Shown in pieces: positions 1,863 to 57,000 of a DNA stretch of 57,288 bases. Each line of letters opens with the position of its first letter. Position 1 is the first letter of the stretch. The DNA is from Basidiobolus meristosporus CBS 931.73 (taxonomy: Eukaryota > Fungi > Basidiobolomycota), in contig MCFE01000566.1 in the NCBI GenBank assembly GCA_002104905.1, positions 1-57,288 of the forward strand, given 5' to 3'. The position numbers were made by a program, and so were the translations under genes. The notes beneath the pieces were generated by a model that had not been told where the DNA came from, did no database searches, and was given only the letters and a program-made list of their open reading frames with translations.

Positions 1863-2911
1863 GCCCCACCCACAGCATACAGGGCCTTTAGACAGATATG
1901 AAAAGCAAATAAAATGGCTCTATAACTCACGTAGTCACCATCGTTTTGAGGGCTGAGGGAACTGCCTGGCCTGATTTACGCGAACAGTGGGGTTGACTTG
2001 GTCTTAGACTTGCCTAAGGGCTGGGCTGGGGCGGAAAACAGAGCTCTGTATGCACGAAGTAACGTCACACCGTATGTTAGGGATAAAATGTCCGTATTGT
2101 TTAGCGCAGTAGATTACACCGGTACCGGGGTCAAGGTTGAAGGGTGGCCGAGTGGTCAAACGCAACATAGCAGAGTTATGGATGCCATAGGTACACATAG
2201 TTGCACCACTCTAACATGGAATCTCTATGCGGAGCTGGATTGGCGTAGACGTACGATGTGGTTCTCATGTATTCGACACGGACAACAATCTAGCGCCTGC
2301 CCGAGTATATGCTGGCCATATGCTGCTTCACCAACAGACCCATTCCATACACGTGCACAGGGTGATCGACTCCAACCAGAGCTATTCTACGGACACATAT
2401 CGATCACGTATTCTCAGTCAATGAGCATCACGAGCTCAATTTAGAGTTTGCATAGGTTTGATGGTCGATGTGGTTGGCGGGTGTTTGACCCATGATGTAG
2501 GTAACGAATTCCTTCGAACATTCAAGAGAGTGGAATAAGCTTTACATAGGGGTAAGGGGATCTATGAATTAGGCTGCTTTGTAATGGATTCCTAGTTTAA
2601 AAGGCGTGGATAGTGAATTGATTCGCATGCTGGGCCACCTACATGTTTCAAACGGAGTTGACAATGATGAATGCTGGGACCTTTGGCAATGCACGTCAAG
2701 CACGTATTTGGCAGTCCCATTGCACCTTCGATTTTCTGACTATCACCAAGACCTGATGCCGCTCCGATTATAAACTGCGCCAATATAAAAGCCGCGCCAG
2801 ATGCCTCGTGAATGATGGATTAGACCTCCAGTGTGCTAGTTCTACTTTCAGAGAAAACGCCTCTTCTTCACCTCCCTGCTCTTTGTTTCGTTGGTTCCGA
2901 ATTCACGGTTG

Positions 2912-6712: not shown

Positions 6713-7567
<855 letters not shown>

Positions 7568-15229: not shown

Positions 15230-16744
15230 TTAGATATCCATGGATTCATCGTCCTCATCATCAACATCGGCTTCCATTTCATCATCATCTTCAGATTCGC
15301 TGTCATCAGCAGGTAGGGTAAGAGTGGGCTTCTCTTCGACTACAGCTTCAGATCCGGGAGCGATACCGCGCCCTTCAAATGAGCGACGAACACCAGGGTT
15401 GGTAGCCAAGTCCCAAATATGAACTTCACCCTTGGAACCAGCAACTCCGAGCTGGAAAGCAGAATCAGGGCAGAAGGTTGCACTGAAGATCTTTCCAACA
15501 TCCAAGTTACGGCTGGTAACCATACTGGGTTTGTTCTCCTTAATATCCCAAACCTTGACAACCTTATCAGTAGAGCCTGTAACAAGTAGTCCAGGGATAA
15601 CTGGGTTGACATCCATAGCGGAGACAGGGGAGTCGTGGGCATGAAGTGTGAACAAGGCGGAGGTATTGGGGTTACGAACGTCAAAGCACTGAACGGTTCC
15701 AGATTCAGTTGAAACATAGAATTGTTGAGGTTGGAATGGATCCCATCTGATGCATTCAACATCGGACTCAATAGTCCAGGTAGAGATACTTTCGGGTGAG
15801 CGAGAGTCGAAGGCAGCAATGACTTTATCGTAACCACCGGTAAGCATAACAGTGGATTCAACAGGATGCCACATCACAGTCTGGACCTTATCCTTGTGGT
15901 GGTCGAAGGATCTGACGCATGAGGCGGTGGCCAAATCCCAGATCTTGACTGTGGTATCGGCTGAAGAACTAGCAAGGAGATTACGATGGTTCTTGTTCCA
16001 AGAGAGAGACATAACGGCATCAGTATGATAGTTGGGGTTGACCTTCTTGGCCTTTTTGCCGCGCTTGGCTTTCTTGTCGGGATTGCCAAGAATGAGATCG
16101 GGATACATGGAGTCTACGGTGTCCAAATCCCAGATTTCAATATCAGGGTCGAATGTTCCAACGGCGACGAAGTTTCCTGATCCCTCACCAGCTTGCTTGC
16201 CGACCTTGAAGTCGAGCCACTCAAGGCACAATGGGAAAGATGGCAACATAATGTCATGATGAACATACAGGTTGTCTTCGTTTTCTTCGTACACATAAAT
16301 CTCCATGTGACTGATATCGTCCTCAGTCTTGGCAGCAAGCAAGAGATTGTCGGTAGGCAAGATTTGGAGCTCTTCTTTCTCGGAGTCTTCTTCGTCATTG
16401 ATGGTGATATATGGGTCTTCCTTGTTCGAGTTATAGTAAGTCAGACCTTTGACTTTACCGAAAATCGAAACGTCCTGCTCCTCTCCCTCCTCTTCCTCAG
16501 GGGCAGGAGTATCGTAGTTTTCGAGATCATATTCGGCCAATTCAGGATCAATGACAGTTTCCTTCTCAGCTGCCTCAACTTCGGCGCCGGTTTCCTCCTG
16601 CGCTTCTTCTAGTTCACCTTGTGCGCGAGCGAGTTCTTCGGCAGCAAGGGTCTGGATTCTTTCGTACTCTTTCTCGTCGATATCATATTTCTTTGGGTTC
16701 TCACTAGCAACACCCCTTCTAATCCAGCATAAGGCGGAGATCAT
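15230..16744 (-). CDS. PWP1: Periodic tryptophan protein 1 (WD40, ribosome biogenesis), intronless
   Basis: MISALCWIRRGVA start, acidic region, EDNLYVHHDIMLPSFPLCLEWLD, GNFVAVGTFDPDIEIWDLD, WD40 repeats and an acidic tail. Confidence 0.93.
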   Translation of the reverse strand: MISALCWIRRGVASENPKKYDIDEKEYERIQTLAAEELARAQGELEEAQEETGAEVEAAEKETVIDPELAEYDLENYDTPAPEEEEGEEQDVSIFGKVKGLTYYNSNKEDPYITINDEEDSEKEELQILPTDNLLLAAKTEDDISHMEIYVYEENEDNLYVHHDIMLPSFPLCLEWLDFKVGKQAGEGSGNFVAVGTFDPDIEIWDLDTVDSMYPDLILGNPDKKAKRGKKAKKVNPNYHTDAVMSLSWNKNHRNLLASSSADTTVKIWDLATASCVRSFDHHKDKVQTVMWHPVESTVMLTGGYDKVIAAFDSRSPESISTWTIESDVECIRWDPFQPQQFYVSTESGTVQCFDVRNPNTSALFTLHAHDSPVSAMDVNPVIPGLLVTGSTDKVVKVWDIKENKPSMVTSRNLDVGKIFSATFCPDSAFQLGVAGSKGEVHIWDLATNPGVRRSFEGRGIAPGSEAVVEEKPTLTLPADDSESEDDDEMEADVDDEDDESMDI

Positions 16745-18124
16745 GGCGAAGTGAAAAGTCAATAGAAAGTAAGAAGAAAAGAGTGTGCTGAAAACGAAAA
16801 CTCCTCGACTTTTTTCTAACTGCAACGAAAATCCTCTTCACCACATTAATCTGATCACTTTTTTTCTTGCTGATCATCCATTAGTATCAAACGAACTATT
16901 TTTCTTTTTTTTTTCAGACCTACAGTGAGGCTTCGTCGCATCACGTGATATATATTACAGGATTATTTGTACCAGAACTACTAATCAATGGAGTAAGAAT
17001 CCGGCAGTCCACAGATCTGCAAATCAAGAAATAGCAGATTGCGGTGAAGAATGGGCCGGCATAATCCAAGCAAAATTGGCACAACATTGGATAGAGTATT
17101 GGCAATCCCATTCCAAGAGTTGCCGGAGCTGAATTCAGCAAGGATCCATTAGGAAACATTACTAACGATATCAGTTTTCCTAGTCTGGCTGGAGGTTTCC
17201 CAAATCAACCCTAGCATGCTTTGGTTGTAGGATTATGACTCTGGGGCATCCGGATTACTATTATTTATATCCTGCAAATTTGAGCAGTGGCATGTACATA
17301 TCTTGATATATGGGCATACCCTCCCCACTAGAGGCTAGTTGATGGACCACCTTCGTGTCACGTGACATAGAATAGAGAGATACATCCGCCGCTAATTATA
17401 GATAAATAACGCTTGAAGGGAAGAGCTAGATGGCTCATGTGATTGCTCGACCATTGCTGCCCAACTGTCAACCATTCAATTTGTTGGCCTCTGCCCAGAA
17501 GTAATTAAATGTGTTGATACTGATCAACTATTCGCTGGCCCAACATAGAGTTGTGATTGACTTGGCCACTAGAAAGAATTGCCGTCCTTGATGGGTTTGA
17601 TCAATCATTATTGCTGAAACATTCTTTCAGTCTTCAGTGAGCCAAGGCATTTCGTATTACAATACCATCAGGCGATACACCTCAAAGAATTTGAGTGGGA
17701 ATAGTCATGAGCACCATGTATGTATATATTTATATATTGAGTTTGCTATTGAAACGGCATTGACTTGGAGTATCACCCCTTGCAACTGCCCCAACAATAC
17801 CTAGCTTGGATGCGTCATTCTCTATTGCTTAAACACGGATGATTTTATTGGATTTCTATTCCAGATCTGTCAGAGTTAAAGCTAAAGGCCAACCAAAAAT
17901 GTGAAAGAAATCTCGCCGATCTTTAGTTTACATCCTACTATTTATTCCTATATATATACTCCAGCCATATGTTGGTGATATCATTCCATGCAACACTTTA
18001 TCACACGATATTTCTAGAGATATGAATCAGTTTATTGTTGAATAGCCAACCAATGAATTCTTATGGGGGATAGAATTCAAGTTAGACTTGAATATAAATA
18101 GTTGATCCATGCCCTGAATTATAA

Positions 18125-19242: not shown

Positions 19243-22200
19243 CTATTTGATCTTTAAAGTACGTTGCTTTTCTGCGTGTTCCACGATCTTTCTTTCCACA
19301 AATAGACCCTATGAGAGAAATTGGATATGGTTAGATGAATTTCACCAACTTGTTTTTTCATAGGGTTACGATTGACTTACCTTACGCTTTCGAACTCCGT
19401 CCATATACTTCTTGGCTAGATTCTCTTTATCGGCCTTTTCGCCCAAATCTTCTAGTTCCTCTTCAGTTGTGGGTACCCAGAATGGGTCCTGGTCCAACAT
19501 TTCGAATCCGCAGAATACCAATTGAGGACTGGCAGCGCCAGATGTACGCTTACGAATATCGTCGGCAAAACCGAAACTTTCCACGACGGGTAGTAAGGCC
19601 TTGATGTGGAAGAATGGTGTCCCATCCTTCAGCTCTTCTGACAAGATCTTTCCTCTACGTCTGGATAAAACTGCGTATACCTTTCCTAACACATCGGTTT
19701 GCGCTTGAATTTCACAAGAATACATGGCTAGCAATAAGCGTGGAGACCAAGCCAGCAATCCTTGACGACAAGCTTCTTTCATTGCGTAGATTATCTGGCC
19801 GGAAACCATGCCGAGCTTAGAGCGAGCGGTGATGTCATCGTCTTCTTCGTCGTTCTCTACAATGAATTCCTCCAGGAAGAAGCACATTCCGGCCATGGGC
19901 TCAGAGCATAAAGGCCCGGCAAATGTAGCAAGCTGGAATCCGGTATTGATGCTTTCTTCGAACTCACGGATTGTGTTTCTGGTGGAGTCCAGTGCTTCAT
20001 CTTTGCTACCTTCTGGTGAATCCACTTCATCGTCACTCACTCGTGCTTCGGCCTTGGTGTCTTGCTTGAACCAAGACTTTCCTCCGGGGACATTGTTAAC
20101 CAAGATATTGGGTCCTGCACGCTTGGGCCCAAACATCCATATCTTATCAACAACACCTTGCCAGATGTCACCACCCGACTTCTTGAACTTGTGCTCCAAT
20201 TTCTCCTTGAATTCGGCTAGCGACAGCTCTTGCTTGATTGTGCTGGTGCCGGCAATGTCAGCAGTGATGTTCTCAGCCGTGACATCTTCCTCATTTGTCG
20301 AGTTCTTGTTGTCTTTTTCATTGGACAGTCTCTTTAGAGTGTTGATGTTTTTGTTGAGGAATTTCACAACCTTGGGTGGCAAGGGCATGGAGCGAATCTT
20401 AAGGGTGCACATCTTGTTGGGAGTAGACATGCTGATTACACCGCGTTGATCGTTTCTGGGTGCATCGGTAGGAACGACTGCCGTCTCACGGAATGGCACG
20501 ATTGGGGATGACACCTGAATCTCAATCTTGGCAAATCTCTCTTTCAGGTCAGTGAGGCATCTCTCAAGATGCAGCTCACCAGCGGTCAAAAGAACATGCT
20601 CACCAGTCTCTTGGACGACCACCTCTACTGATGGATCGGCTTGGTTTAGCATTCTGAGTCCCTCAACCAAAATTGGCATCTCGGACGGGTTGACTGGCTC
20701 CAAAGCCACACGAACAATAGGTGCGGTCTCATTCTTCGATGCCCCTAGACTGGGGCACTCCTTGGTGCTACTGATCGTACCGCTCTTCAAGATATGTCCC
20801 TCGATGCCCCCAATACCAAACACGTTTCCAGCAGGTACTTCTTGTAATGCCTGCAGCTCTCGTCCCATTATCAGATAAAGGTTCTGAACCTTGATCTGGC
20901 TACAATGGCGGTCCGGATATGCAGGATCATACTTCGGACCAAGCACGTACAAAGTTTGCCCAACACGTACGGTTCCTGAGTACACTCTAGCGAAGCCAAT
21001 TAGAACTTCTTTAGAAACGGGGTCACTAGAGGACTCGTCCACTTTTTCCTCCACTTTGTTTGGCTCTTCCAGGATTGCGGGATCCAGTGCGATTCCATGA
21101 TCGCCAGTAACTGACTGGCTGGCCTCTCTGGCTGCGCGAATAGTCCTGCCGCGTGCTCTCATTTCCTCTGCTGTCAGCTGGATTCTTCTGTTCTCCGGTA
21201 GTAATTCCTGAGGGACTGAGATCACCTTGGAGATATACGCAGCAACGGGGGATTCCTCCTTGCGTTCGCAATTGAACAACGCAGCCTCGAGTTCGTTCTT
21301 GGGGCTGGGGGCTTCGCTCTCGTAAGGGTACAAAATCTTCGGAATGCGGTAGCTCTGTGCATCCCGTGGGGAGGGAAGTTGATCGACAATTGCCAGAAGA
21401 ATGGAGGTGGACAATGGAAGCCATTGGCTGAATATGGCGCTTAGTAGAATCTTGGTGTCCTTGGATCTCATGTCGCGGGGCAAAATTTTAAGATTCAACG
21501 CCTTCACAATCTTCTCGATCTTCTCTTGGTTGCTAGCAACAAACGAATCTTTAGAGATGGTTAGGCCAGGCAATTGTGCGCGTAATACACTTACTTGTTC
21601 ATGACTACGCAGTCGTAAACTGCCCAGATGTTCTCCAGAACGAATTGCACGAACATCGGCTTGAGCTGGCGACCTTTTAAATGGCGATGTTGAATGATTC
21701 GCTTTGACTTCGGGTCCAGATAATAATCGCCCCATAGGGTCTTCTTGAGAAGGGATTCCTTGATCTTCAACTTATCGGCGTACAGTTGAGCGAATTGGTC
21801 GACCCTAGAAATCACCCAAGTCAGCAACACTCTTCACAACCACCCACTATTCAACATCGATGAAAACTACCTGAATGCCCAGCCATCGATGGCACTGGCG
21901 AACAGCACATTTCCTAACTCTGGTGCGAAATAAATATGAGAGTCATCTCTATCTTCTATGGTCCAATCATAAAATTGTTGCTCTAATGGCTCTGTTTCCG
22001 CTTCTGAATTGGTGCGAGCGATCTGTAAAGGAGTTGGGCCTCCAAAGTTACCAACTGGCTGTGTGTGTTTTCAAGGTATTGCCTACCTACCTTCTCGGCT
22101 TCAACCTTGCGGGCTTCTTCCTCCATCAATTCAGCAGTGAAGAACGTGGCCATGATGGCATTGACTTGCTCGAGGATGTTGTTTAAATGTGTGTAGGCTT

Positions 22201-31146: not shown

Positions 31147-32242
31147 TTAGGCTGACATGTTCATTGAGATTTTGCTATGAGGCGAATAGTTCTTCAATAT
31201 GAAGTCTTCAAAGCGGAAATCCTCAATTGATTTGACCGACGGATTGAGCTGTAATGACGGGAATGGTCTAGGCGTACGTTTCACTTGTATGGCCAGGGCG
31301 TCAATATGGTCCTCGTATACATGAGCATCGCCCATGCAGTGAATGAGGCTTCCTGGTTGAAGACCTGTAACATGAGCAACCATGTATGTCAAAAGAGCGT
31401 AACTTGCGATATTAAATGGGACCCCAAGTCCCATGTCACACGATCTCTGATACATTTGACATGAAAGGTATGGCACTGGATCCTGAGGCGTAGCTGTGGA
31501 TACATAGAATTGGCAGAACATGTGGCAAGGCGGGAGAGACATCTTTGGAATATCTAGATTGGCATTGGTTACTAGACTGCCCAGAAAAACGTGCAATGTC
31601 AAATGAAAGAATACCAGAGGGATTCCACGCGGTTAAGATAATCCGCCGGTCAGTAGGATCACGCTTTATGCGGCTAATGACTTGAGAGAGCTGGTCAATT
31701 CCTTGGCCGCCGTACTCAGCTTGCCAATTAGTGTACGTAGCACCGAAATGACGCCACTGAAACCCGTAAATTGGTCCTAAATCACCTTCTTCTCTATCTT
31801 CTAGGCCTAATCTATCCAGGTACTCTCTAGAACCATTTTTTTCCCAGATGTTTACTCCTTTTTCTGAGAGCTCCTTGGAGTTGGTTCCCCCACGAATGAA
31901 CCATAGTAATTCTTCAACCACTCCACGAAAAAATACCCGCTTGGTTGTTACCAAAGGGAACAGTCCGTTTTTCAGAGAGAAGCGCAGTTGAGGAGGAGCA
32001 AATACCGAGAGAGTCCCGGTCCCCGTTCTATCCACACGATGCTCCCCGTTGAGTAAGATATGCTTGATAAGATTCAAATACTGATATTCCTCATGCCGGT
32101 CAGCAACAATCTCGGTGGTAAATTTCCTGGCACTGAGTTGTGGTGTTTTACCGGTGAAAGGGGGGGATGGGCAGAAGGTGGGGTACAGCCTTGAAGCTGG
32201 GAGAGAAAATTGTTTGCGAGACAGTGCTGAAATTGACCGCAT
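31147..32242 (-). CDS. CDC21: Thymidylate synthase with an N-terminal extension, 2 exons (intron 31554-31614)
   Basis: [64 protein letters not shown]|[11 protein letters not shown] (catalytic Cys), [24 protein letters not shown]. Confidence 0.97.
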
Positions 32243-33642
32243 TTTGAGAGAAAGAAACCAGCGAGTGCAAACCAGTTTCGTATTTGAATTTGAGTGTGGC
32301 CAAGCTAACCAATACCTATGCTGATGAAAATCATCTGCATTCTCCAGGCCCCTCTTTCGCCATAGTTTTGCCGTGCATTTGCCCATAGCAAAAGCATACC
32401 TGTTGGTAAACCGTTATCTACAATCTGTGTACGATGCGCAATCGTAGGTTGGTAAGCCATCTCGGTTCCCCACGGATGATATAGATATATGGATCCGCCT
32501 CATTAATCAACTATGATGAAAAGTCATGACATTGGGAGAAATAAAGATGTGTGTCTTGCCAAATCCCCCTCATCTGCTACACAGTATAAGCCGGTAGAAG
32601 TATGAAAATCCGGGGTGAGTGAAATAAAGCAACATGCTCAGGGTCAACCAATAGTAATAAGGATAGCCATTGTGCCCACGGCTTGTCCAAGTCTTAAGAC
32701 ATCTGCCTGTTGTCTTAATCGCCATATGGGCTCTTCAAGAATGTGGATAGGCGAGCGGGCGACGCAATCTGCGATATAGAGAGTGCCTATTTGCATGACC
32801 CAGCAGCTGGCTGGATAGCACAGGGCAAACATCTGCAATGTCATACCTATTTTGATACGCATCGGTTGCAGTAACCTCAATAAGCCAAAGCCACCAAGCT
32901 GGTCATAATAATATGTTGATATCGCAATCAAGGAAATCATTTCTTCCGTAGGGGAGTAGTCCGCAGTAAACCGTGATTGCCTTAACTTGCTGATCAGTTT
33001 TGCATGTAGGTCCACTTCGAGAACTTCGATCAATTCTCCAAATCTACCCTCCACCGGCCAGTTAAGGCCTGGGACCAACATCTGCAATGCCGATTCAATC
33101 AATCGATCAATGATCAGCCATTACCCATACCAGTAAGACAAATTGTAATGATCGCTACAGGGTTCACAAGCGATTACTCATCATCATATGCAATTATCTA
33201 TGCTTCAAATGCTCGTGCAGACCCAAACGGTGTTGACATATGACCATGCAAATCAATGTGCTCATTTGATTGCGTTGTCCCCATCTATATATCCATGAAA
33301 GCACATGATCATGGCCCATTATTTCCCACGCTGATGAGAACTGCTCCCCAGTTGGTTTCTATCCATATCTGTCGGTTGATATGGGCTATCAGTAATTTTC
33401 AACATATATTTAATCATTTTCTGAAGCTTAGGTAGGCTTCGAAAGTTTGGGGCGGATAAGGGTGGGTAGTAAAATATCTAACAAACCAGAAAGAAAGAAT
33501 CACGAATCCGGCGAACGTTCAGAAATGAATGGAAAAGAACGTAAAGATGGATATCATAGTACTAATAGATTTTGAATGCCAAATATGATGATGCCATAAA
33601 AAACATACTGAGATGCAATGGTGATTTTCTATGATGCTTTGG

Positions 33643-35424
<1,782 letters not shown>

Positions 35425-37043: not shown

Positions 37044-38768
37044 ATGGAAGGTGGAAGACAGTCCAAGGCCTCTTATATTTATCCAACACTAAAGCCTTCC
37101 GAGATATTGATTTGCATGAGGGACTTGCAGATCCCTTTTGCCGAGGAAGACTTGACCAAACCAACCGCGCTTCGATTGGCTCTTGTGTATGAGGCATTCG
37201 TAGACATCTTCATGGGGATACCTAAAGAGCAATTTGAACAGCCACCTGAGGGGGTACTGGACATGTTGGAACATCCAGAAATCCACATGTCGGCCCTGAC
37301 GCAAATGTCATTCTTCTCCAAACTGTACATATCTCACTAGTTCACGTACCCCCTTTTCAACTATTGACTAGCCTCATTTCTTCCATTTGTCTAGCAACAA
37401 GTTGATGATTGAGATTGGCGTGGACGATTTCAACTTGCGTGATTTGTTGAAACCAGAGCCAACTCATGTTCGACGTATTCTAAGCGCTCTCATTAACTTT
37501 GCCAAGTTCAGGGAGGAAAGAATGGCTATGTATGAGCAGTATGCACAAAAAACGGTAAGCCACCGTTCAAAGGAGCTTTCCATACTACCAACGGTTCTCT
37601 TTCTAAAAGCATCCTTTCTATAGGAAGAGTACAACGAGGAAAAGAACCAGCTTGAACATCATTATCAGGAGCTTGCAGAAAAAGTAAACAACATAAAGTC
37701 AGTATTCGTAGAGTTGCTTACCCAGCAATCCCATCATGACCCTTATGTTTGCTAGACTTCAGCGAGCCGAAGAGGAGCCCGCCATCAAAAAACTTAACGG
37801 TGCCAATTCCGATTGGACTCGTGGACTAAAAGAGCTTAAAAGGCAGCAGATTGCTCTGTCTTCGGAAATCGAGAATCTGAAAAAGAAGCGGGATGAGCTC
37901 AATGATTCTTTGGTAGGATGATGTCAACCCGCCAAGCATGGGATGCCACTTCTAATCCCCTCTTCTTAGACAAATGTTCAGTTCTTGGTCATGAATTGTA
38001 AGCAGGATAGCGAGAAGGTCCGCTCACTGATCGTACATAGTCCAGAAAAACTGGTGCAACAATTAGAGGAGCTAAGCAACACTTTGTCCGCCACCAAAAA
38101 CAACATTGCTACTAGCGAAAAAAGAGTCAGAGAGATGCAATCCAAGATCGATATGATGTTCTTTGTTGAGCAGGTAGTTTCTGTTTATTCATTTTGCTGA
38201 GATACACCGAGTAATCTGGCATGGTTATCAGGATGTTCTAGCCTCAATCAAGCTGTTGGAGGAATGCGAGGTGGAGATGAACAAGTATGATCAGGCGTTA
38301 CAACAGGTGGATATTGAAAAGGAAGAAATCGAGAAAAAAGAGGCGGAGTTGCGAGACTTGACCATCAAGGAACAGGCATGTTTGTTCATGAGCATCTGCA
38401 TGTCAAGACAGACAATAACATTGAGTGGAATTGTTTAGCAACTAAATCGCCAATTGGCAGCATCCCAGGAAAAAATCAACCGCCTGCAAAAGCACCAGTC
38501 TATCAAACGAGGCTCGATCGAGAACAAGTTGAAGTCACTCCGTGAGGAATACGATGTCATTTCCAACGAACGCACCACTGTCCAAGCCAAGATCGATGAT
38601 TACAGAAGAATTGCTGATGAAATGGAGGCGAAGACAGTTGAATTACGGAGAAGCATGGAGGTGGAGATGTCCCTGATTCAGGCTGAATATACCAAGTTAA
38701 CTGGCCAGGTGGAGTATTATCAAAATCAGTTGATACAGGCAATCACCAAGAGACCTTACGCACCATAG
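37044..38768 (+). CDS. NUF2: Kinetochore NDC80-complex subunit Nuf2, multi-exon
   Basis: YPTLKPSEILICMRDLQIPFAEEDLTKPT; DFNLRDLLKPEPTHVRRILSALINFAKFREER; IVHSPEKL; long C-terminal coiled coil. Confidence 0.92.
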
Positions 38769-40442: not shown

Positions 40443-43400
40443 CTACGTGCTGCTGAACTTGTTGATTGTGTTGACAAGCTCATTGAACCGCAGTGGCTTG
40501 GTGACATATTCGTCCATCCCGGCACTGAGGCATTTCTCACGATCCCCGATCATTGCGTGGGCGGTAAGTGCGATGATTGGGATATGCATGCCAGTGATCC
40601 TTTCCATCTCGCGGATGCGCGCTGTAGCTTCGAACCCACCCATGATGGGCATCTGGAGATCCATCAATATCAGGTCAAACTTCGTGTTCTCCACCGCCTC
40701 TACCGCAAGAAGCCCATTAGACACGATCACAACCTCGTGGCCATGCTTTTCCAGGATTCTGACCGCAATCTTCTGATTCACAAGATTGTCCTCGGCAAGC
40801 AGAATCTTCATCTTCTTGGCGTTTACCTCTGTGGTTAAGGCTAGGTGGGATTCAAGAGCTGGCATCAATGCATTTGTGAGCTCGGTTATGTTGGCTGGGA
40901 CATTCATATAGGAGGTGATCAGCATATCAATGCAGCTCTTCATTTTCAATTTCATGGGCATCGTGATGGCTAGCAGTACCACCGGGACATAGCGAAGACA
41001 TGGATACTGGCGGATTTTTTCCACGTCCGACACTTCATCGACGACCACCATGTCGAAGAGCGGGGTTGTTGGCTTCGATGAGCTGGCTACGTTTACTGCC
41101 TCCTTCACCGAAGAGACCAGTACGGGCTTGAGCCTGAGCTCCTTCAACATCTCGAAGACAGTTAGGCTTTCCGGGTGCTTTTGGGTACTCAGGAATAGAA
41201 CGTTTCTGTTGCTGAACGAAACGATACGTTGCTCGATCTGCTCCGGAGGCATATGGCCGAGGGTGAACTCGGTTGTGAAATAAAAGTCACTGCCCTCCCC
41301 ATAGATGCTCTTAACCCACAGATCGCCGCCCATTAGATTGACCAGCTGCTTTGAGATGGACAAGCCAAGGCCAGTGCCTCCGTACTTCCGGGTGGTGGAC
41401 CCATCTGCCTGCGAGAATGTGTCAAAGATCAGGTTGAATTTGTCGCTCTGGATTCCGATGCCCGTATCCCCTACACAGAATGTCAGTACTGTTTTGTCCG
41501 CGGTGATCTTCTTTACAGTGGCCTGCAGGATCACTTGGCCTTCCGTGGTGAATTTGATTGCGTTCCCAACCAGATTGGTGATTACCTGGCGCAATCGCAA
41601 GGGATCCCCCACTAGCTGGTCGGGTATGTCTTTGTCTACGTCGTACACCAGGTCGAGCCTCTTCTGGTTGGCCTTCACCGCTAGAGTCTTCAGTACACCA
41701 AACACAGCATTCCTTAGAGAGAAGGGGATCTGCTCAATCATCAGCTTGCCTGCTTCGATTTTGGAGATATCCAGAATATCGTCGATGATTGTCAGCAAAG
41801 AGTTTGCGAGCTGATTAACGATAGTAAGGTTTTCTCTCTGCTGTCGGGTCAGGTCGGATTCCAAGGTGAGGCCGGTCATACCGATAATCCCATTCATTGG
41901 CGTTCGAATCTCGTGAGACATATTGGCCAAGAACTCGCTCTTGGCGCGGTTGGCAAGTTCGGCTGCCTCTCTCGCGGCTAGGTTTCTCTGGATGCTCTCC
42001 CTCAAGTTGTAGACCATCTGGTTGATCTTGGTTTTGAGCGAGTCCATCTCACCGGATGCCTCGACTGTGATGTATCTTGTGTAATCCCCGTCAGTCGCTG
42101 CGGCAGATATTTGGGCAAATGCTCTAACTTGCGTGGTGAGATTCGCTGCCATTGTGTTTACGTTGCTGGTTATTTCTTGCCAGATTCCTTTGACATCCTT
42201 CACTTGTGCCTGGACCCCCAGTTTACCTTCGGTACCAACTTCACGGGCCACACGGGTCACTTCTGCTGCAAATGTACTCAGTTGGTCCACCATGGTGTTG
42301 ATCGTGTTCTTCAGGTCCAAGACCTCTCCCTTCACATTGACCGTGATTTTCTTGGATAAGTCGCCACAAGCAACGGCCTTACATACATGTGCGATATCTC
42401 GAACTTGGGCGGTCAAATTCGATGCCATGGTATTAACATTGTCGGTAAGCTCTTTCCACGTGCCATCCACGTCTTTCACCACCGCTTGCCCACCCAGGAA
42501 TCCTTCTGTTCCTACTTCTCTGGCCACCCTGGTTACTTCGGCTGCAAAGATCCGTAATTGGTCCACCATAGAGTTGACCGTATTTTTCAACTCCAGAATT
42601 TCTCCTTTCACATCTACCGTGACCTTTTTCGATAGGTCACCGCGAGCAACTGCTGTTGTGACGGCTGCGATAGATCTCACTTGCCCGGTCAAATTGGCTG
42701 CCATGATGTTGACATTGTCAGTCAGATTTTTCCAGATACCTGCAACATCCTTCACTACAGCCTGGCCGCCAAGCTTCCCTTCGGTGCCAACCTCTAGGGA
42801 TACTCGTGTAACCTCTGTGGCAAACGTTTGGAGCTGATCAACCATGGTGTTTATCGTGTTCTTGAGATCTAGCATCTCTCCTTTAACGTCGACGGTTACC
42901 TTCTTGGACAAGTCTCCACAGGCTACGGCTTTGCTAACGTTTGCTATGTCACGGACCTGATCGGTCAAGTTGGCAGCCATTGTGTTTACATTGTCCGTTA
43001 GCTCCTTCCATGTACCTCCGACATCTTTTACAATGGCTTGTCCTCCTAGTTTTCCCTCCGTACCCACTTCACGAGCGACACGGGTCACCTCCGCTGCGAA
43101 AGTCCGCAACTGGTCAACCATGGAATTAACCGTTGTTTTAAGCTCATTAATCTCGCCTTTTACGTCAACCGTGATTTTCTTGGAGAGATCACCGCACGCC
43201 ACCGCAGTAGTAACTTCGGCAATTGAGCGCACCTGGCCCGTGAGATTCGCTGCCATGATGTTAACATTGTCTGTTAATTCTTTCCATATACCCGCAACTC
43301 CTTTGACTATGGCTTGACCTCCAAGCTTTCCTTCGGTACCAACTTCAAGTGATACTCTCGTTACCTCGGTGCCAAATGTTTGCAGTTGGTCAACCATGGT

Positions 43401-46400
43401 GTTGATAGTATTTTTAAGGTCCAGCATCTCCCCTTTGACATCCACGGTAACCTTTTTCGAAAGGTCGCCTACAGAGATTGCTTTGCTAACATGAGCAATA
43501 TCGCGAACTTGTGCGGTGAGATTCAAAGCCATCATGTTGACGTTTTCTGTCAGGTCTTTCCAGGTTCCACCTACATCCTGGACTACAGCTTGTCCTCCTA
43601 GCTTCCCTTCTGTGCCGACCTCACGTGCTACTCTAGTCACTTCAGCAGCAAAGGTTCGGAGTTGGTCAACCATAGTGTTGATGGTTAATTTCAGATCCAG
43701 AATTTCGCCTTGGACGTTAACAGTAACCTTCTTGGAGAGATCACCGGTAGCTACGGCTTTGCTGACACTTGCAATATCTCGTACTTGGCTAGTCAGATTC
43801 CACGCCATCATGTTGACATTTTCAGTCAAGTCTTTCCAAGTACCTCCGACATCTTTTACTATGGCCTGGCCACCAAGCTTCCCTTCGGTGCCGACTTCTC
43901 TGGCCACTCGAGTCACCTCGGAGGCAAATGTCTGCAACTGGTCCACCATGGTGTTGATCGTCACCTTCAGCTCGTTGATCTCTCCTTTCACATCCACAGT
44001 GACCTTTTTGGACAGATCTCCACGAGCAACCGCTTTACTCACATTGGCTATATCGCGGACTTGTGCAGTCAAGTTCGATGCCATCAGATTTACATTTTCT
44101 GTGAGGTCTTTCCAAGTTCCACCGACATCCTTGACAACTGCCTGCCCGCCTAGTTTTCCTTGAGTACCGACTTCTCTCGCAACCCTGGTCACTTCGGATG
44201 CGAAGGTTTGCAGTTGGTCAACCATAGTATTGATGGTATTTTTCAGTTCAAGAATTTCGCCTTTGACATTAACTGTGACCTTCTTGGATAGATCGCCTCG
44301 AGCCACTGCTTTACTGACATTGGCTATGTCCCGGACTTGGCCGGTTAAGTTAGATGCCATCAGATTGACATTGTCGGTGAGGTCTTTCCAGGTGCCTCCA
44401 ATATCTTTTACTATGGCCTGGCCACCAAGCTTGCCTTCAGTACCGACTTCTCTGGCCACTCGAGTCACCTCGGATGCAAATGTCTGCAACTGGTCCACCA
44501 TGGTGTTGATCGTCACCTTGAGCTCGTTGATCTCTCCTTTCACATCCACAGTGACCTTTTTGGACAGATCTCCACGAGCAACCGCTTTGCTCACATTTGC
44601 TATGTCCCGCACCTGATTGGTAAGATTGGAAGCCATCATATTCACGTTGTCAGTCAGATCCTTCCAGGTTCCGCCAACATCTTTGACAACCGCTTGTCCA
44701 CCAAGCTTACCCTCTGTACCGACTTCTCTGGCCACTCGAGTCACCTCGGATGCGAATGTCTGCAACTGGTCCACCATGGTGTTGATCGTCATCTTGAGCT
44801 CGTTGATCTCCCCTTTCACATCCACAGTGACCTTTTTGGAGAGATCCCCAACAGAAATGGCTTTACTCACATGTGCGATGTCTCTTACTTGGTTGGTCAA
44901 GTTAGATGCCATCAGATTGACATTGTCGGTGAGGTCTTTCCAGGTGCCTCCAACATCTTTGACAACTGCTTGTCCACCAAGTTTACCCTCTGTGCCGACT
45001 TCTCTGGCCACTCGAGTCACCTCGGATGCAAATGTCTGCAACTGGTCCACCATGGTGTTGATCGTCACCTTCAGCTCGTTGATCTCTCCTTTCACATCCA
45101 CAGTGACCTTTTTGGACAGATCTCCACGAGCAACCGCTTTGCTCACATTTGCTATGTCCCGCACCTGATTGGTAAGATTGGAAGCCATCATATTCACGTT
45201 GTCAGTCAGATCCTTCCAGGTTCCGCCAACATCTTTGACAACCGCTTGTCCACCAAGCTTACCCTCTGTACCGACTTCTCTGGCCACTCGAGTCACCTCG
45301 GATGCAAATGTCTGCAACTGGTCCACCATGGTGTTGATCGTCATCTTGAGCTCGTTGATCTCCCCTTTCACATCCACAGTGACCTTTTTGGAGAGATCCC
45401 CACGAGCAACCGCTTTACTCACATTTGCAATGTCACGTACTTGCGCAGTAAGATTGGACGCCATGAGGTTGACATTCTCGGTGAGATCTTTCCAAGTTCC
45501 ACCGACATCCTTGACCACAGCCTGGCCACCAAGCTTGCCTTCTGTTCCAACCTCTCTTGCTACCCTGGTGACTTCCGAGGCAAATGTCTGCAGTTGATCT
45601 ACCATTGTGTTAATAGTGTTCTTGAGATCGAGCATTTCGCCCTTTACGTTCACCGTAACCTTCTTTGAGAGATCACCTCGTGCCACCGCCTTGCTCACAT
45701 TTGCTATATCTCGAACTTGGTTGGTAAGGTTTGAGGCCATCATGTTTACTTTGTCGGTCAAATCTTTCCAGGTGCCTCCAACATCTTTTACTATGGCCTG
45801 GCCACCAAGCTTTCCTTCGGTGCCGACTTCTCTGGCTACCCGAGTCACCTCGGATGCAAATGTCTGCAGCTGGTCCACCATGGTGTTGATCGTCATCTTG
45901 AGCTCGTTGATCTCCCCTTTCACATCCACAGTGACCTTTTTGGAGAGATCCCCAACAGAAATGGCTTTACTCACATGTGCGATGTCTCTTACTTGGTTTG
46001 TCAAGTTAGATGCCATCAGATTGACATTGTCGGTGAGGTCTTTCCAGGTGCCTCCAACATCTTTGACAATGGCCTGGCCACCAAGTTTGCCTTCAGTACC
46101 GACTTCTCTGGCCACCCTAGTAACCTCGGATGCGAATGTCTGCAACTGGTCCACCATGGTGTTGATCGTCATCTTGAGCTCGTTGATCTCTCCTTTCACG
46201 TCCACAGTAACCTTTTTGGAGAGATCCCCAACAGAAATGGCTTTACTCACATGTGCGATGTCTCTTACTTGGTTGGTCAAGTTAGATGCCATCAGATTGA
46301 CATTGTCGGTGAGGTCTTTCCAGGTGCCTCCAACATCTTTGACAACTGCTTGTCCACCAAGTTTACCCTCTGTGCCGACTTCTCTGGCCACTCGAGTCAC

Positions 46401-48284
46401 CTCGGATGCAAATGTCTGCAACTGGTCCACCATGGTGTTGATCGTCACCTTCAGCTCGTTGATCTCTCCTTTCACATCCACAGTGACCTTTTTGGATAGA
46501 TCTCCACGAGCAACCGCTTTGCTCACATTTGCTATGTCCCGCACCTGATTGGTAAGATTGGAAGCCATCATATTCACGTTGTCAGTCAGATCCTTCCAGG
46601 TTCCGCCAACATCTTTGACAACCGCTTGTCCACCAAGCTTACCCTCTGTACCGACTTCTCTGGCTACCCGAGTCACCTCGGATGCAAATGTCTGCAACTG
46701 GTCCACCATGGTATTGATCGTCATCTTGAGCTCGTTGATCTCCCCTTTCACATCCACAGTGACCTTTTTGGAGAGATCCCCACGAGCAACCGCTTTACTC
46801 ACATTTGCAATGTCACGTACTTGCGCAGTAAGATTGGACGCCATGAGGTTGACATTCTCGGTGAGATCTTTCCAAGTTCCACCGACATCCTTGACCACAG
46901 CCTGGCCACCAAGCTTGCCTTCTGTTCCAACCTCTAGTGATACCCTGGTGACTTCTGTTGCGAATGTCTGCAATTGGTCTACCATAGTATTGATAGTCGT
47001 TTTTAATTCGTGAATTTCGCCTTTAACATCAACTGTAACCTTCTTCGATAAGTCACCTCTGGCAACTGCCTTGCTTACGTTGGCAATATCTCTCACTTGT
47101 GCTGTAAGATTGGAGGCCATCAAATTTACATTGTCTGTCAGTAGTTTCCAGGTTCCATCTACACCAGGAACTTCAGCTTGGACACCAAGTTTTCCTTCTG
47201 TTCCCACTTCATGGGCAACGCGAGTTACTTCAGAGGCAAATGAGTTCAGCTGATCTACCATTGTGTTGATAGTGTTCTTCAAAACGAACGTTTCGCCCTT
47301 TACATCCACCGATATCTTCTTAGATAGGTCTCCGCACGCCACTGCTGTGCATACTTCAGTGATATCACGAACTTGCTCAGAGTGGCTTGAAGCCACGCGA
47401 TTCAAGTTGATCATCATCTCTTTCCAGGATCCACCCCATTTACGAGTTTCACCTTGAATACATAATTTACCCATTTCGGCCATTTCACGTCCAACATGTA
47501 ATACTTCGGAGGAAAGCTCCTCCAAGCGGTCGGCCATACTGTTAATCGCGTTCTTCAAAGCCAAAGTAGATCCGGTAGCTTCTGTACACACAATACGCTG
47601 AGAGAGGTCGCCATTTGTAATGGCAATGGCAACTTTAGTACACTCGTCCATACAGTTTGAACAAGTGCTCTTTGAGTTACTGGATGGTGTGAGAGGATGA
47701 ACATCGTCAAGTTCATCGTCATAGTCCTCGCCAGAGGCAGAGGTGCAAGAAGAGGAGAGCGACTCCGCTTCTGAATGCTTACCCGAAATGTAGGTTGGTA
47801 GATGTGGACCCACTTGGGATACAAGTAGCTCAAGGGAATTGGAAATGCCCTGATCGTTGTCCAGGTGGGAGGAGAATTTGCCTTGCCCTTCCGGAGTATG
47901 GGTCTCTCGTTGTCTGGCGAGATAATCACACTCCGCGGAATCCCCATTGGAGCCTATCGGTAAGTACGGGCGGGGGTTGGTCACCTCACTAGGAGGAGGA
48001 ATTCTACCATAACGTTGCTGGTATCTCTCCAACTCCTTTTCCAAGAATAGTTGGCGACGCAACACCTGTTGAAGGGCCTTTTCCACCTGCATCTCGACCT
48101 CCGAAGACCCACGGTTGAGAGAGTAGGTGTATTTGTTTGGGCTGTCGTGGCCCATGGAAGCCAGAATCTCACCCACGTATGTTAAAAAATCGGCTCCCAT
48201 GTTGGTAGTTGTAGTGTGGATTACTGCGTCGGATGCGAATTTATCCTCGGTGACCACAGATAATCGGCGAGAGGCGAAGGTCAT
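40443..48284 (-). CDS. NIK1: Group III hybrid histidine kinase (NIK1/OS-1-like) with a very long poly-HAMP array; 2613 aa, intronless
   Basis: Tandem 92-aa HAMP units; His[18 protein letters not shown]; HATPase boxes ([30 protein letters not shown]); a degenerate first receiver and a canonical second receiver (LLAEDN...LILMDLQMP...YVTKP). Confidence 0.96.
42000..47640 (-). repeat. Coding tandem array with 276-bp period (20 HAMP units plus a terminal HAMP)
   Basis: The GDLS motif occurs 20 times plus a final GDYT in the translation, and nucleotide motifs recur at multiples of 276 bp. Boundaries are approximate. Confidence 0.95.
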
Positions 48285-51354: not shown

Positions 51355-53716
51355 CTTGTCCAAGTGTTCTGCTGCTAAGAAAATGTATCTGAGGTGAAAA
51401 TTCTTTACTACAAAGATGCTGCCAGGAGAAGAAATGAAAAATCTAACTAACAGAATTACCCTGCTGGTAGATGAAATGGAATCTGTGAGCATACCAACTA
51501 CTGATGAGGATGTGATAGTTACCATCCTGAATAGCCTGACAGACAAGTTTCAGGGCGTTGTATCAATCCTAGAGTCCAGAACTGAAGATTTAACCTTAAA
51601 TTACATATATGGAAGGCTCTTGGATGAAGAATTAAGAAAATCAAGCACCAATAAGAAGGAAGAAGAAAATGCTTTAATAAGAAATGATAACCAACAAAGG
51701 AAGTACTCAAGACCCTACAAAGGCAACAGAAACCTGTTTTGCAACTACTGCAAAGGAAAGAACACACATCAGACCAGTGCCTCAAGAAGAGAGATAATCA
51801 GCAAAAGAAGCCTGAATATGGAAATGCTGCAACAACTGAAGATAGACTATTCATATCTGCACTAAATATGACCACAAATAAAGATTCTCAGATGTGGTAT
51901 ATTGACTCTAGAGCATCTCAACACTATACACACCAAAAAGAACATATTACCCAATATTAAGAAATTCCAATTAAGAAGGTTTTCATGGGTGACAATAGAA
52001 CACTTGATGCAGTGGGAAAAGGAACTATCCAAGTAAACCTTAGAAGCAGTGAAGGAAGCCATACACTGACCTTTAAAGAAGTACTCTATGTTCCAGATGA
52101 TAGCCAAGAACCTGCAATCTGTAAGCAAGGCCACTGTAGAAGGACTCAATTTCAGCTTTGACAATTCTGGATGCAAGATCACTGATCAAAATGGTGCCCA
52201 TATTGCTTTGGGTATCAGAAATCAGAATCTATACAGGTTGACTTATATTCCATTGTATTTGGAAGCCAATATAAGTAATATAAATGAAGAAGCACCAATG
52301 CATTGGCACAGAAGATTTGGACACATCAATTTTGATTATTTGCGCAAAATGATCAAAGATCAGCTAGTTTCTGGAGTAAAAATTGATCCTCCAGCTAATT
52401 TGGAGCACTGTGAAGCCTGCATATATGGGAAACAAGCCAGACCACCGTTCAAGAACTCTGGGTCAATTAAAACTAAGACAAATTAGATCTAATTCACTCA
52501 GATCTGTGTGGACCTATGCAAAATTTATCCTTAGGTGGGATGAAGTATTTAATCACTTTTATTGATGATTATACAAGATACATGTGGGTTTACCTCATGG
52601 AGAGAAAGAAAGAAGCTCTGTCCAAGTTCAGGGAGTTCAAAGCCATGGTGGACAGAGAAACTGGTGAAAAAATCAAGAAAATATGCTCTGACAATGGTGG
52701 AGAATATATCTCAAAACTCTTCATCTACTTCTGCAAAATTCATGGGATAAAGCAAGAGACTACTGTACCATACTCCCCACAGCAAAATGGAGTAGCAGAA
52801 CGTGCAAACAGATAAATAACTGAAATGGGAAGATCTATGATCCATGATCAATTATTATCCTATGATATTTGGGTAGAATCAGATGCCATATCTGTATACC
52901 TTAAAAATAGGAGTTATAACAGAATACTTTGTGATTCTACTCCATTTGAAGCATGGTATGGTTACAGATCAAGTGCAGAACATCTACAAATATTTGGGTG
53001 TGCAGCATATGCCAAGAAACTTTCTGGAAATCAGCCAGTTTTTGAGCCAAAAAGTGTAAAATGAATATTTTTGGGTTACTGCAATGAGAGTAAAGCATAC
53101 AGACTCTACAATAACAAAGCAAAGAAGCTAATCAAGTCCAGGGATGGGTTGTTTGATGAAAATTTAAAATTTTCACAAAAAATGACATTGGAAGATGACA
53201 AAAATCTGTCCTCTAGTCCACCAATTGTCAGGATTAAATCAAAGCAAAACAATGAGAATTTCTCACTCCAGAGGACTCTACAACTATAGTTCAGCCTGAA
53301 GCAGTGCCCAGGAATATCCCAGAAGTGATCATTCCAGTATTAAATGCCCAGAGATCAAATTGGACAAGAAATAGCCCAAATTACTATATCAATGAGGGTA
53401 CAAACTTAGCCTATGCCTATTCAGTCCATATTGATGAGCCCCAGACTGTAAAAGAGGCCCTAAATAGCCCTCAGACAAGGTTTTGGAGATCAGCAATGAC
53501 TTAGGAATATCAGGCCCCAATGGAAAATCAAACTTGGGACTTGGTCAAATTACCAATCAACAAAAAATCAATTGGATGCAGAAGGGTCTTCAAGACCAAA
53601 TACAAGGCTGATGATACAATTGAAAGATACAAAGCAAGACTTGTGGCCAAAGGATACTCTCAAACAAAAGGACCTGACTATACTGAGACCTTTGCATTGG
53701 TAGGCAAGTTTAATTC
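51355..53716 (+). mobile_element. Decayed, 5'-truncated Ty1/copia retrotransposon (partial gag, protease, integrase, start of RT)
   Basis: Colinear with 54390-56750 but carries premature stops (AGG TGA, CAA>TAA, TCA>TAA, TGC>TGA, GAG>TAG), frameshifts and DSG>DSR in the protease. Homology ends abruptly after AAGTTTAATTC at 53716. Confidence 0.93.
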
Positions 53717-54066
53717 TGTTGTAAAAATTTGTATTTCCACCTAAATATTCACCTAGCTTAGTCACTTAGATCATCACCTTCAAATCCTAGAGAATACTGA
53801 CCAAATTCCTTGTTGGGATTTACTTGGAATATTTTTCACCAAAATGCCAGGTACCCAGAACATGAAAATTCTCAAAGTTGTCCAAACAGCCCCAAACTTT
53901 GCACACATGTTCTTGGGACCTTCCTTAACCTATTCTACGTGTTTGTAATGCCAAGACCAGGTAAAAGTATAAATACTACTTTTACATTCAATAAATCATT
54001 AAGTGAAAACCACATAATCTACTTGTTCTCCAAATCACTTCCAATATCTCCAAGACTCTTACAACA
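53717..54066 (+). repeat. 5' LTR (350 bp)
   Basis: Begins TGTTGTAA exactly where the older copy breaks and ends TTACAACA (perfect 8-bp terminal inverted repeat) directly before the primer site; contains TATAAATA and AATAAA. The 3' LTR is outside the window, so the pair cannot be confirmed. Confidence 0.8.
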
Positions 54067-54078
54067 GGTTATGAGCCC
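54067..54078 (+). promoter_or_regulatory. Primer-binding site GGTTATGAGCCC (internal initiator-tRNA type)
   Basis: Abuts the LTR end and matches the Ty5/Drosophila-copia class of primer site rather than TGGTATCAGAGC. Confidence 0.75.
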
Positions 54079-54097
54079 CAAGCTGTCACTCTCTGCA

Positions 54098-57000
54098 ATG
54101 TCTACTACTGCTATTACTGGAATTTTTCCCTCTGCTGAAAAGTTGGATGGATCTAACTACCAAGTGTGGAAGGTGAAGATGAAGATGCTGCTGCAAGAAA
54201 GAGGCCTTTGGGATATTGTCATGGGAGAAGAATGCCCTCCTAAAAACGTGGGAGAGGAAGCCTTAAAGTACCAGAAGAAAGAACAAAGTGCCTTTAACTG
54301 CATTTGCCTTAATGTCAAGGACAAATTGCTAATTCAATGCTCAAGAGCAAAAACGGCAAAGAATGCCTGGAAGGCATTAGAAGACACCTACCAGTCATGT
54401 TCAGCTGCCAAGAAAATGTATCTGAGAAGAAAATTCTTTACTACAAAGATGCTGCCAGGAGAAGAAATGAAAAATCTAATTAACAGAATTACCCTGCTGG
54501 TAGATGAGATGGAATCTGTGGGCGTACCAACTACTGATGAGGATGTGATAGTTACCATCCTGAATAGCCTGACAGACAAGTTTCAGGGCCTTGTATCAGC
54601 CCTAGAGTCCAGAACTGAAGATTTGACCTTAAATTACGTATATGGAAGGCTCCTGGATGAAGAATTAAGAAAATCAAGCGCCAATAAGAAGGAAGAAGAA
54701 AATGCTTTAATAAGCAATGATAACCAACAAAGGAGGTACCCAAGACCCTACAAAGGCAACAGCAACCTAATTTGCAACTACTGCAAAAGGAAAGGACACA
54801 CATCAGACCGATGTTTCAAAAAGAGAGATTATCAGCAAAAGAAGCCTGAATATGGAAATGCTGCAACAACTGAAGATAGTCTATTCATATCTGCACTAAA
54901 TATGACCACAAACAAGGATTCTCAGACGTGGTATATTGACTCTGGAGCTTCTCAACACTTTACACACCAAAAAGAACTTTTTACCCAATATCAAGAAATT
55001 CCAATTAAGAAGGTTTTCATGGGTGACAATAGAACACTTGATGCAGTGGGAGAAGGAACTATCCAAGTAAACCTAAGAAGCAGTGAAGGAAGCCATACAC
55101 TGACCTTTAAAGAAGTACTCTATGTACCAGAAATAGCCAAGAACCTACTCTCCGTAAGCAAGGCCACAGCAGAAGGACTCAGTTTCAGTTTTGACAATTC
55201 TGGATGCAGGATCACTGATCAAAATGGTGCTCATATTGCTTTGGGCATCAGAGATCAGAATCTATACAAGTTGACTTATATTCCATCATATCTGGAAGCC
55301 AATATAAGTAACTTAAATGAAGAAACACCAATGCTTTGGCACAGGAGATTTGGACACATCAATTTTGATTATTTGCGTAAAATGATCAAAGATCAGCTAA
55401 TTTCTGGAGTGAAAATTGATCCCCCAGCTATTTTGGAGCACTGTGAAGCCTGCACATATGGGAAACAAGCCAGACAACTGTTCAAGAGCTCTGGGTTAAT
55501 CAAAACTAAGAAAAAATTAGATCTAATTCACTCAGATCTGTGTGGACCTATGCAAAATTTATCCTTAGGTGGGATGAAGTATTTAATCACTTTTATTGAT
55601 GATTATACAAGATACACATGGGTCTACTTCATGGAGAGAAAGGAAGAAGCTCTGTCTAAGTTCAGGGAGTTTAAAGCCATGGTGGAGAGAGAAACTGGTG
55701 AAAAAATCAAGAAAATACGCTCTGACAATGGTGGAGAATATACCTCAAAACTCTTCATCCACTTCTGCAAAATTCATGGGATAAATCAAGAGACTACTGT
55801 ACCATACTCCCCACAGCAAAATGGAGTAGCAGAACAAGCTAACAGATCAATAATTGATATGGCAAGATCTATGATCCATGATCAAAAATTATCCTATGAT
55901 TTTTGGGTAGAATCAGTTGCCACTGCTGTATATCTTAAAAATAGGAGTTATAACAGAATACTTTGTGATTCTACTCCATTTGAAGCATGGTATGGATACA
56001 GACCAAGTGCAGAACATCTAAGAATATTTGGGTGTACAGCATATGCCAAAAAACTGGCCGGAAATCAGTCAAAATTTGAGCCAAAAAGTGTAAAATGCAT
56101 ATTTTTGGGCTACTGCAATGAGAGTAAGGCATACAGACTCTACAATACCAAAGCAAAGAAGCTTATCAAGTCCAGGGATGTGTTGTTTGATGAAAATTCA
56201 AAATTTTCACAAAAAATGACATCAGATGATGACAAAAATTTGATCTCAAGTCCACCAATTGTCAGGATTGAATCAGAGCAAAACAATGAAAATTTTTTCA
56301 CTCCAGAGGACTCTACAACCGTGGTTCAGCCAGAATCAGTGCCCAGGAATATCCCAGAAGTGATCATTCCAGTATCAAATGCCCAGAGATCAAATTGGAC
56401 AAGAAATAGCCCAAATTACTATATTAATGAGGGTACAAACTTAGCCTATGCCTATTCAGTCCATATTGATGAACCCCAGACTGTAAAAGAGGCCCTAAAT
56501 AGCCCTCAGACAAAGTTTTGGAGATCTGCAATGACTGAGGAATATCAGGCCCTGATGGAAAATCAAACTTGGGACTTAGTCAAATTACCAATCAACCAAA
56601 AATCAATTGGATGCAGATGGGTCTTCAAGACAAAATACAAGGCTGATGGTACAATTGAAAGATACAAAGCAAGACTTGTAGCCAAAGGATACTCTCAAAC
56701 AAAAGGACTTGACTATACTGAGACCTTTGCACCGGTAGCCAAGTTTAATTCCATCAGATTAATATTGGCTATTGCAGCCAAATATAAGTTTTTTATTCAT
56801 CAAATGGATGTAAAAACTGCATTTTTGAATGGAGAACTTGATGAGGACGTGTATATGGACCAGCCTGATGGGTTTGTTGACCAAGATAACCCCCATTTGG
56901 TCTGCAAGCTTAAAAAGTCACTATATGGTCTCAAACAATCACCAAGAGCCTGGAATTGCAAGATAGATTCTTATTTGGAATCTTTGAGTTTCAAAAGGAG

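Follow-up and report, generated by a model that had tools for sequence, protein, structure and literature searches.

Group III hybrid histidine kinases of fungi are defined by tandem HAMP repeats and an H-box signature (PMC4965123). The members described in Dikarya (Os-1/Nik1 of Neurospora, CaNik1, DhNik1, TcsC, Drk1, Bos1, Hik1, and Tco1) are soluble proteins in which tandem units of 92 amino acids (aa) precede a HisKA, a HATPase, a pseudo-receiver, and a receiver domain, in that order, and deletion studies in these fungi show that the HAMP region governs kinase output (PMC13452588). Arrays of "dozens" of HAMPs have also been described, with 4778 kinases containing at least five consecutive HAMPs catalogued and crystal structures available for the array of AskA, which contains 21 HAMPs, while AskB contains 31 (PMC13446029). 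Here we describe a kinase gene of this type with 41 HAMPs in Basidiobolus meristosporus CBS 931.73, located at positions 40443..48284 on the minus strand of contig MCFE01000566.1 (assembly GCA_002104905.1), of which a stretch of 57,288 nucleotides, hereafter the window, was analyzed. Taken together, the best explanation, which we consider very probable, is that this gene is a group III paralog combining a 41-HAMP rod with a complete phosphorelay transmitter and a HOG-type output (HOG, high-osmolarity glycerol), and that its array length is usual.

The gene is a single exon, a stop-free open reading frame (ORF) that begins with ATG and encodes a hybrid histidine kinase of group III with 2613 aa (approximately 283 kDa); all features described for it below lie on the minus strand. 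The non-HAMP region at the N-terminus (aa 1-206; 47667..48284) is Ser/Thr-rich and acidic and contains neither a Pfam domain, nor a recognisable sensor domain, nor a transmembrane segment. Kyte-Doolittle means over 19 residues peak at 1.33, short of the customary threshold of 1.6, and so indicate no membrane helix; the protein is confidently predicted to be soluble and cytoplasmic, with no transmembrane segment. The public Joint Genome Institute (JGI) gene model is 2549 aa long and begins at Met65 of the ORF. Because residues 1-64 (48093-48284) align with the N-terminus of P0025, a paralog discussed below, the true start is probably the upstream ATG at 48284 rather than Met65. Pfam also lists extra matches over the whole protein, such as ATG17_like, HMG_box, HTH_6, and SpoIIID, which were discarded as summed repeat noise with zero significant stretches.

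The HAMP array extends over approximately 1,894 aa and consists of 20 full units (aa 207-2047) followed by a terminal HAMP (aa 2048 to approximately 2100). A motif scan identifies 21 GD[LY][ST] motifs at an exact spacing of 92 aa, except for a first gap of 93; Tandem Repeats Finder (TRF) reports a 276-bp period with 17.9 copies and 77% matches; and Pfam detects HAMP in 18 stretches and HAMP_2 in 20, the former lying over each unit's first half (for example, aa 1400-1451) and the latter across the junction. The first-pass annotation of this DNA, which had described a 2613-aa ORF with 20 GDLS-type units of 92 aa and a terminal HAMP, is borne out by these three approaches. Its remark that the protein recalls long bacterial poly-HAMP kinases is likewise substantiated, as three ORF units align with the AskA crystal construct 9trk at an expect value (E) of 4e-82 (9trj also matched). 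This alignment spans six HAMPs, which is why each 92-aa unit is read as one canonical and one non-canonical HAMP. The sensor part contains 41 HAMPs in strict alternation, comprising a divergent canonical HAMP followed by 20 pairs of a non-canonical and a canonical HAMP.

Unit 1 (aa 207-299, 93 aa; 47388..47666), delimited by motif spacing and paralog comparison, is a divergent first di-HAMP module; it shares 60-63% identity with unit 1 of the paralogs and approximately 10%, ungapped, with the remaining units, and its position corresponds to that of the "D1-type" first canonical HAMP of kinase arrays (PMC13446029). Units 2-20 (aa 300-2047; 42144..47387) are 19 modules of exactly 92 aa, each composed of a canonical and a non-canonical HAMP, as defined by Pfam, TRF, motif spacing, and the AskA alignment. 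The terminal canonical HAMP (aa 2048-2100; 41985..42143), located by the motif scan, runs into the helix of the dimerization and histidine phosphotransfer (DHp) domain and shares 95-98% identity with the final HAMP of the paralogs. Across units 2-20, 48 of the 92 columns are invariant, a repeat far beyond chance; G19, G31, G62, G65, G68, G78, and W80 are invariant, and every one of the 20 units contains at least one Trp. Di-HAMP modules and conserved junction Gly and Trp residues are described for poly-HAMP arrays (PMC13446029), and the ORF has each of the features by which that study recognises such arrays: at least five consecutive HAMPs, di-HAMP modules, and a divergent first canonical HAMP. 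Like the ORF, AskA and AskB alternate canonical and non-canonical HAMPs, begin with a divergent HAMP, and have a hybrid kinase as output; they contain fewer HAMPs than the 41 found here, and the later units of AskA, from Myxococcus xanthus, are approximately 80% identical to the Basidiobolus units. AskA differs in its biology, being tied to development and sporulation.

That the 20-unit array is an assembly expansion, the real gene being much shorter, is very improbable. Suspicion could fall on two sets of closely similar stretches. The first is a young repeat of 833 bp, whose copy A (coding sequence nucleotides 1330-2162, inside units 4-7; 46123..46955) is 98.8% identical to copy B (nucleotides 2710-3542, inside units 9-12; 44743..45575) five units downstream; the second is a 421-bp stretch that recurs at a two-unit offset with 98.3% identity. 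However, even these youngest copies differ, the longest exact repeat is 287 bp, and most units are 20-35% apart in DNA, with unit-to-unit identity ranging from 63 to 100%. Furthermore, the frame is intact across 7.8 kb, the genome was sequenced with PacBio (PMC7466969), arrays equally long or longer are found in independent genomes of many fungi, and the end units match those of an 18.5-unit paralog one to one. Identity between units by codon position is 0.86/0.93/0.46, and Nei-Gojobori comparisons give a median proportion of synonymous differences (pS) of 0.79, which is saturated, against a median proportion of nonsynonymous differences (pN) of 0.10; the ratio of nonsynonymous to synonymous substitution rates (dN/dS) is approximately 0.07 among unit pairs with finite dS. 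Judged by this substitution pattern, the units are old copies under purifying selection and not assembler stutter. We rejected an assembly artefact on the basis of the diverged units, the saturated synonymous sites, and the PacBio genome, and a pseudogene is ruled out by the intact 7.8-kb frame and the dN/dS of approximately 0.07. Within the array, units 4-7, 9-12, and 14 form a young family with 84-100% DNA identity to one another, versus 72-80% to any unit of P0025.

Homolog searches were run with the C-terminal part of the protein. Over its C-terminal 550 aa, the protein shares 82-85% identity with other proteins of Basidiobolus, 62-69% with proteins of Mucoromycota, and 57-61% with Dikarya proteins named NIK1 or histidine kinase osmosensor in their source. 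When the core is aligned with 33 homologs, Dikarya members of the family among them (e.g., P0235, annotated as a histidine kinase osmosensor), the H-box (core residues 16-36) shows no variation. A search of representative sequences returned 1184 clusters at E <= 1e-30, indicating a large family; these representatives are clustered at 50% identity, which merges such similar proteins and so yields no distribution of array lengths. In a FastTree phylogeny of the kinase core built from 151 complete sequences, all of them group III-like or bacterial, the bacterial poly-HAMP kinases split from the fungal sequences (support 100), the remainder follows fungal taxonomy, and the query falls within a clade containing only Basidiobolus paralogs (support 99). 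Together with the tandem N-terminal HAMP repeats, the H-box, the hybrid transmitter, and the lack of predicted transmembrane helices, these data support assignment of the ORF to the group III (Nik1/Os-1-type) hybrid histidine kinases, the identity already proposed in the first-pass annotation and now upheld by core identity, H-box, HAMP repeats, and core phylogeny.

The same comparisons bear on whether the gene was recently acquired from bacteria. Its HAMP units are 77-80% identical to units of verrucomicrobial-type kinases, and hundreds of candidate transferred genes have been reported in Basidiobolus genomes (PMC7466969). Against this, the core is 62-66% identical to that of Mucoromycota and 57-61% to that of Dikarya, but only approximately 30% identical to that of the bacterial proteins, some of which have an N-terminal GAF domain; the core tree tracks fungal taxonomy; and the flanking genes are ordinary fungal genes. 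On the core identities, the tree, and the fungal neighbours we rejected a recent bacterial transfer, which is extremely improbable.

The transmitter is complete. The HisKA/DHp domain (aa 2114-2179; 41748..41945), identified by Pfam and motif inspection, carries the phospho-acceptor His2124 in its H-box; the HATPase_c domain (aa 2226-2339; 41268..41609), identified in the same way, contains the N, G1, F, and G2 boxes; and the canonical receiver at the C-terminus (aa 2494-2607; 40464..40805), matched by Pfam Response_reg and confirmed by motif inspection, contains the acidic pair E2498/D2499, the phospho-acceptor D2542, T2574, and K2596. The ORF thus has the HisKA, the HATPase_c, and the C-terminal receiver with acidic pair, phospho-Asp, and Lys that characterize a hybrid transmitter.

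Pfam finds no domain in the 154-aa gap between the HATPase and this receiver, and only a single Response_reg overall. We cut the gap stretch and the true receiver from approximately 110-125 homologs and compared the resulting profiles by hhalign, which aligned the gap domain (aa 2362-2473; 40866..41201) with the true receiver over 105 columns with a probability of 98.2% and E 3e-14. An AlphaFold2 monomer model of aa 2100-2613, computed from a 34-sequence alignment (mean predicted local distance difference test score, pLDDT, 80.9), contains five beta-alpha repeats at model residues 262-380, consistent with a (beta-alpha)5 fold. At the phospho-acceptor position this domain still has its Asp, but neither the acidic pair nor the conserved Lys is preserved, and the domain is therefore best described as a pseudo-receiver. 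The two receiver domains of the first-pass annotation accordingly stand in part: one is canonical and visible to Pfam, while the second is receiver-like in fold according to hhalign and AlphaFold2 but degenerate and missed by Pfam. The top Foldseek match of the core model is full-length ShkA (6qrj) of Caulobacter (E 1.7e-30, 507 columns). ShkA has its DHp, catalytic (CA), pseudo-receiver, and receiver domains in the same order as the Basidiobolus transmitter, an arrangement also found in plant cytokinin-receptor-type kinases (7p8e); the sensor parts of both differ from that of the ORF. The pseudo-receiver of ShkA binds cyclic di-GMP (c-di-GMP); for that of the ORF, no ligand is predicted. Within group III, a pseudo-receiver is an already known feature, since one has been described in Drk1 (PMC6433957).

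To place the array among those of related proteins, we trained a hidden Markov model (HMM) on units 2-20 and used it to determine the unit number of 240 homologs. This ORF scores 20.5 units. Comparable or longer arrays occur in Mortierellomycotina (21-30.5 units), Mucorales (12-27), Kickxellomycotina (17-37.6, the highest value being that of Linderina pennispora, a partial protein of 4268 aa), Dacrymycetes (24-27), and Mycena and Punctularia (14-21), as well as in bacterial GAF-poly-HAMP kinases (17-18.5). Short arrays characterize Saccharomycotina and Saitoella (about 4.5; 4.2-4.7), filamentous Ascomycota and Pucciniomycotina (5.5), Tremellomycetes (6.5), and Glomeromycotina (7.5), while Umbelopsis has both 7.5 and 17.6 units. 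Among these predicted proteins, a long array is the usual state in fungi outside Ascomycota and basidiomycete yeasts, and the length of the ORF is not unusual.

By the unit HMM, Ascomycota and basidiomycete yeasts have 4.5-6.5 units, and the array is indeed three to four times longer than in the Dikarya proteins characterised so far, the first-pass annotation having put the difference at about threefold. The exceptional length it attributed to the gene is not supported: arrays of 15-38 units are commonplace across Mortierellomycotina, Mucorales, Kickxellomycotina, Basidiobolus paralogs, Mycena, and Dacrymycetes. On its further question of whether arrays of about 20 units are both routine and characterised, they are routine but have not been functionally characterised in these fungi, and we found no explicit discussion of long arrays in non-Dikarya fungi in the open literature. 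The Dikarya group III kinases also differ in the mean identity of units within an array, which is 39-48% compared with 77% in the ORF, while sharing with it solubility, the 92-aa unit, the H-box, and the order of transmitter domains. In the long-array homologs (Mortierella alpina, 3638 aa; Linderina pennispora; Mucor; Rhizopus; Calocera; Mycena) and in the paralogs P0025, P0074, and P0153, the architecture and the unit are the same, with 12-38 units, and they differ from the ORF only in the number and order of central units.

Many public entries named histidine kinase osmosensor (P0124-P0172 and similar, 600-1000 aa, from Mortierella, Rhizopus, and relatives) start inside a HAMP unit. In these entries the HAMP unit begins at residue 1-4, often on short contigs, which indicates N-terminally truncated models; public annotation therefore understates array lengths in Mortierella, Rhizopus, and relatives.

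The ORF is one of at least five predicted group III paralogs in B. meristosporus CBS 931.73, the others being P0025 (18.5 units), P0074 (12.5), P0153 (6.5), and the partial P0122. P0025 (2388 aa; L001:10001-17230, contig MCFE01000203.1) offers the closest comparison. A tblastx search with both flanks of the kinase found no synteny with the P0025 locus, and P0025 is therefore a dispersed paralog rather than an allele or a duplicate contig. The ends of the two arrays match one to one, units 1-3 of the ORF corresponding to units 1-3 of P0025 and units 16-21 to units 14-19, and protein identity between matched units reaches 98%. In the centre, the units are interchangeable between the two proteins and their number differs. 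P0025 also has a young repeat, its units 5 and 10 sharing 94% DNA identity, and the offset of five units equals that of the young repeat in the ORF. These patterns fit a history in which central units are gained, lost, and homogenised through unequal recombination or gene conversion, and the end units are specialised and fixed.

By analogy with the AskA structure and Dikarya orthologs, the kinase would act as a homodimer, its array forming a single uninterrupted four-helix rod with a length of the order of 100 nm according to a helix-length estimate rather than a measurement. A conformational change would be relayed from HAMP to HAMP, possibly as alternating rotation or stability states, and the conformations of neighbouring HAMPs would set the balance between the kinase and phosphatase activities of the transmitter. 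Phosphate would then pass from His2124 to Asp2542 and onward to a histidine phosphotransfer (HPt) protein (Ypd1) and regulators of the Ssk1/Skn7 type, which would control a mitogen-activated protein (MAP) kinase cascade of the Hog1 type. Several points weigh against this account. Placement relative to other fungal kinase groups draws on percent identity and the H-box, the tree being composed of group III-like and bacterial sequences; dimerisation and rod geometry are borrowed from a bacterial homolog; and we found no data on expression, phosphotransfer, or phenotype, either for this gene or for any fungal homolog with a long array. No phosphorelay partner gene is seen beside the kinase, although HPt and response-regulator partners were not looked for. 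Finally, in a genome with at least five paralogs, this copy need not be the osmosensor.

This last point leads to an alternative that is possible, though we hold it doubtful: the protein belongs to the same family but has another job, the paralogs with 20.5, 18.5, 12.5, and 6.5 units having divided their inputs after lineage-specific duplication, so that the ORF is not an osmosensor and its array length sets threshold or gain. Candidate inputs include temperature, oxidative or methylglyoxal stress, and development. Four complete paralogs with very different unit numbers do occur in one Basidiobolus clade, every unit is under purifying selection, array length has been treated as a possible tuning parameter (PMC13446029), and non-osmotic roles are reported for group III kinases (PMC4965123). 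However, the sequence points to no specific alternative input, the N-terminal region lacks a recognisable sensor domain, and the recent turnover of central units is explained equally well by a loosely constrained length as by a tuned one. A broader proposal, which we regard as rather unlikely, is that array length is itself a selected variable and that the paralogs are sensors differing in threshold or gain, the series arising through unequal recombination among near-consensus central units while end units stay fixed; under this proposal, long arrays would be ancestral in fungi and the short arrays of model Dikarya a derived reduction.

The conservation of the unit itself raises a further alternative. 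Comparison of bacterial (P0093-P0096, P0105, P0114, and P0115) and fungal homologs shows that the bacterial unit consensus is 85% identical to that of Basidiobolus, and 53 of the 92 unit columns agree in every one of the eight group consensuses; by contrast, kinase-core identity among these proteins is only approximately 30%. Either nearly every residue of this near-universal unit is constrained, or arrays have moved between lineages separately from the kinase core. The discrepancy between unit and core could be taken to mean that the array serves chiefly as a scaffold, whether structural or for binding: a long rod that attaches to partners or DNA, or that self-assembles, and not a conduit carrying signals from its far end. 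We consider such a scaffold improbable: if each HAMP alternates between two core registers, about 4/7 of heptad positions would be constrained by packing, which would roughly explain the 58% of columns that are universal, and the deletion studies in Dikarya place kinase output under the control of the HAMP region (PMC13452588).

The kinase gene is surrounded in the window by a tyrosinase fragment (3627-4460), a WD40 protein (15230-16825), an EFL1-type GTPase (19366-21735), a thymidylate synthase (31436-32386), and LETM1 (33919-34566), and a Nuf2 gene is called at approximately 38443-38768. A polyubiquitin gene (6713-7558, minus strand) contains three ubiquitin repeats with a 228-bp period and 80% DNA matches, the copies differing mostly at silent sites. 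At the other end, positions 52000-56000 have a GC content of 37-39%, versus approximately 45-49% elsewhere, with an AT skew of +0.15-0.19, and no ORF of at least 90 aa was found beyond position 52815.

The first-pass annotation had singled out this gene as a candidate uncharacterised signalling system, a description that our analysis does not support: the gene is one more member, uncharacterised and ordinary, of a family already known, and introduces no new type of system. Phenylpyrrole and dicarboximide fungicides target the pathway of the group III kinases, which are themselves candidate targets for antifungals. Many public gene models in the family are N-terminally truncated, and the 5-7-unit proteins studied so far represent its short extreme, while a single PacBio genome, that of B. 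meristosporus, supplies a natural length series from 6.5 to 20.5 units.

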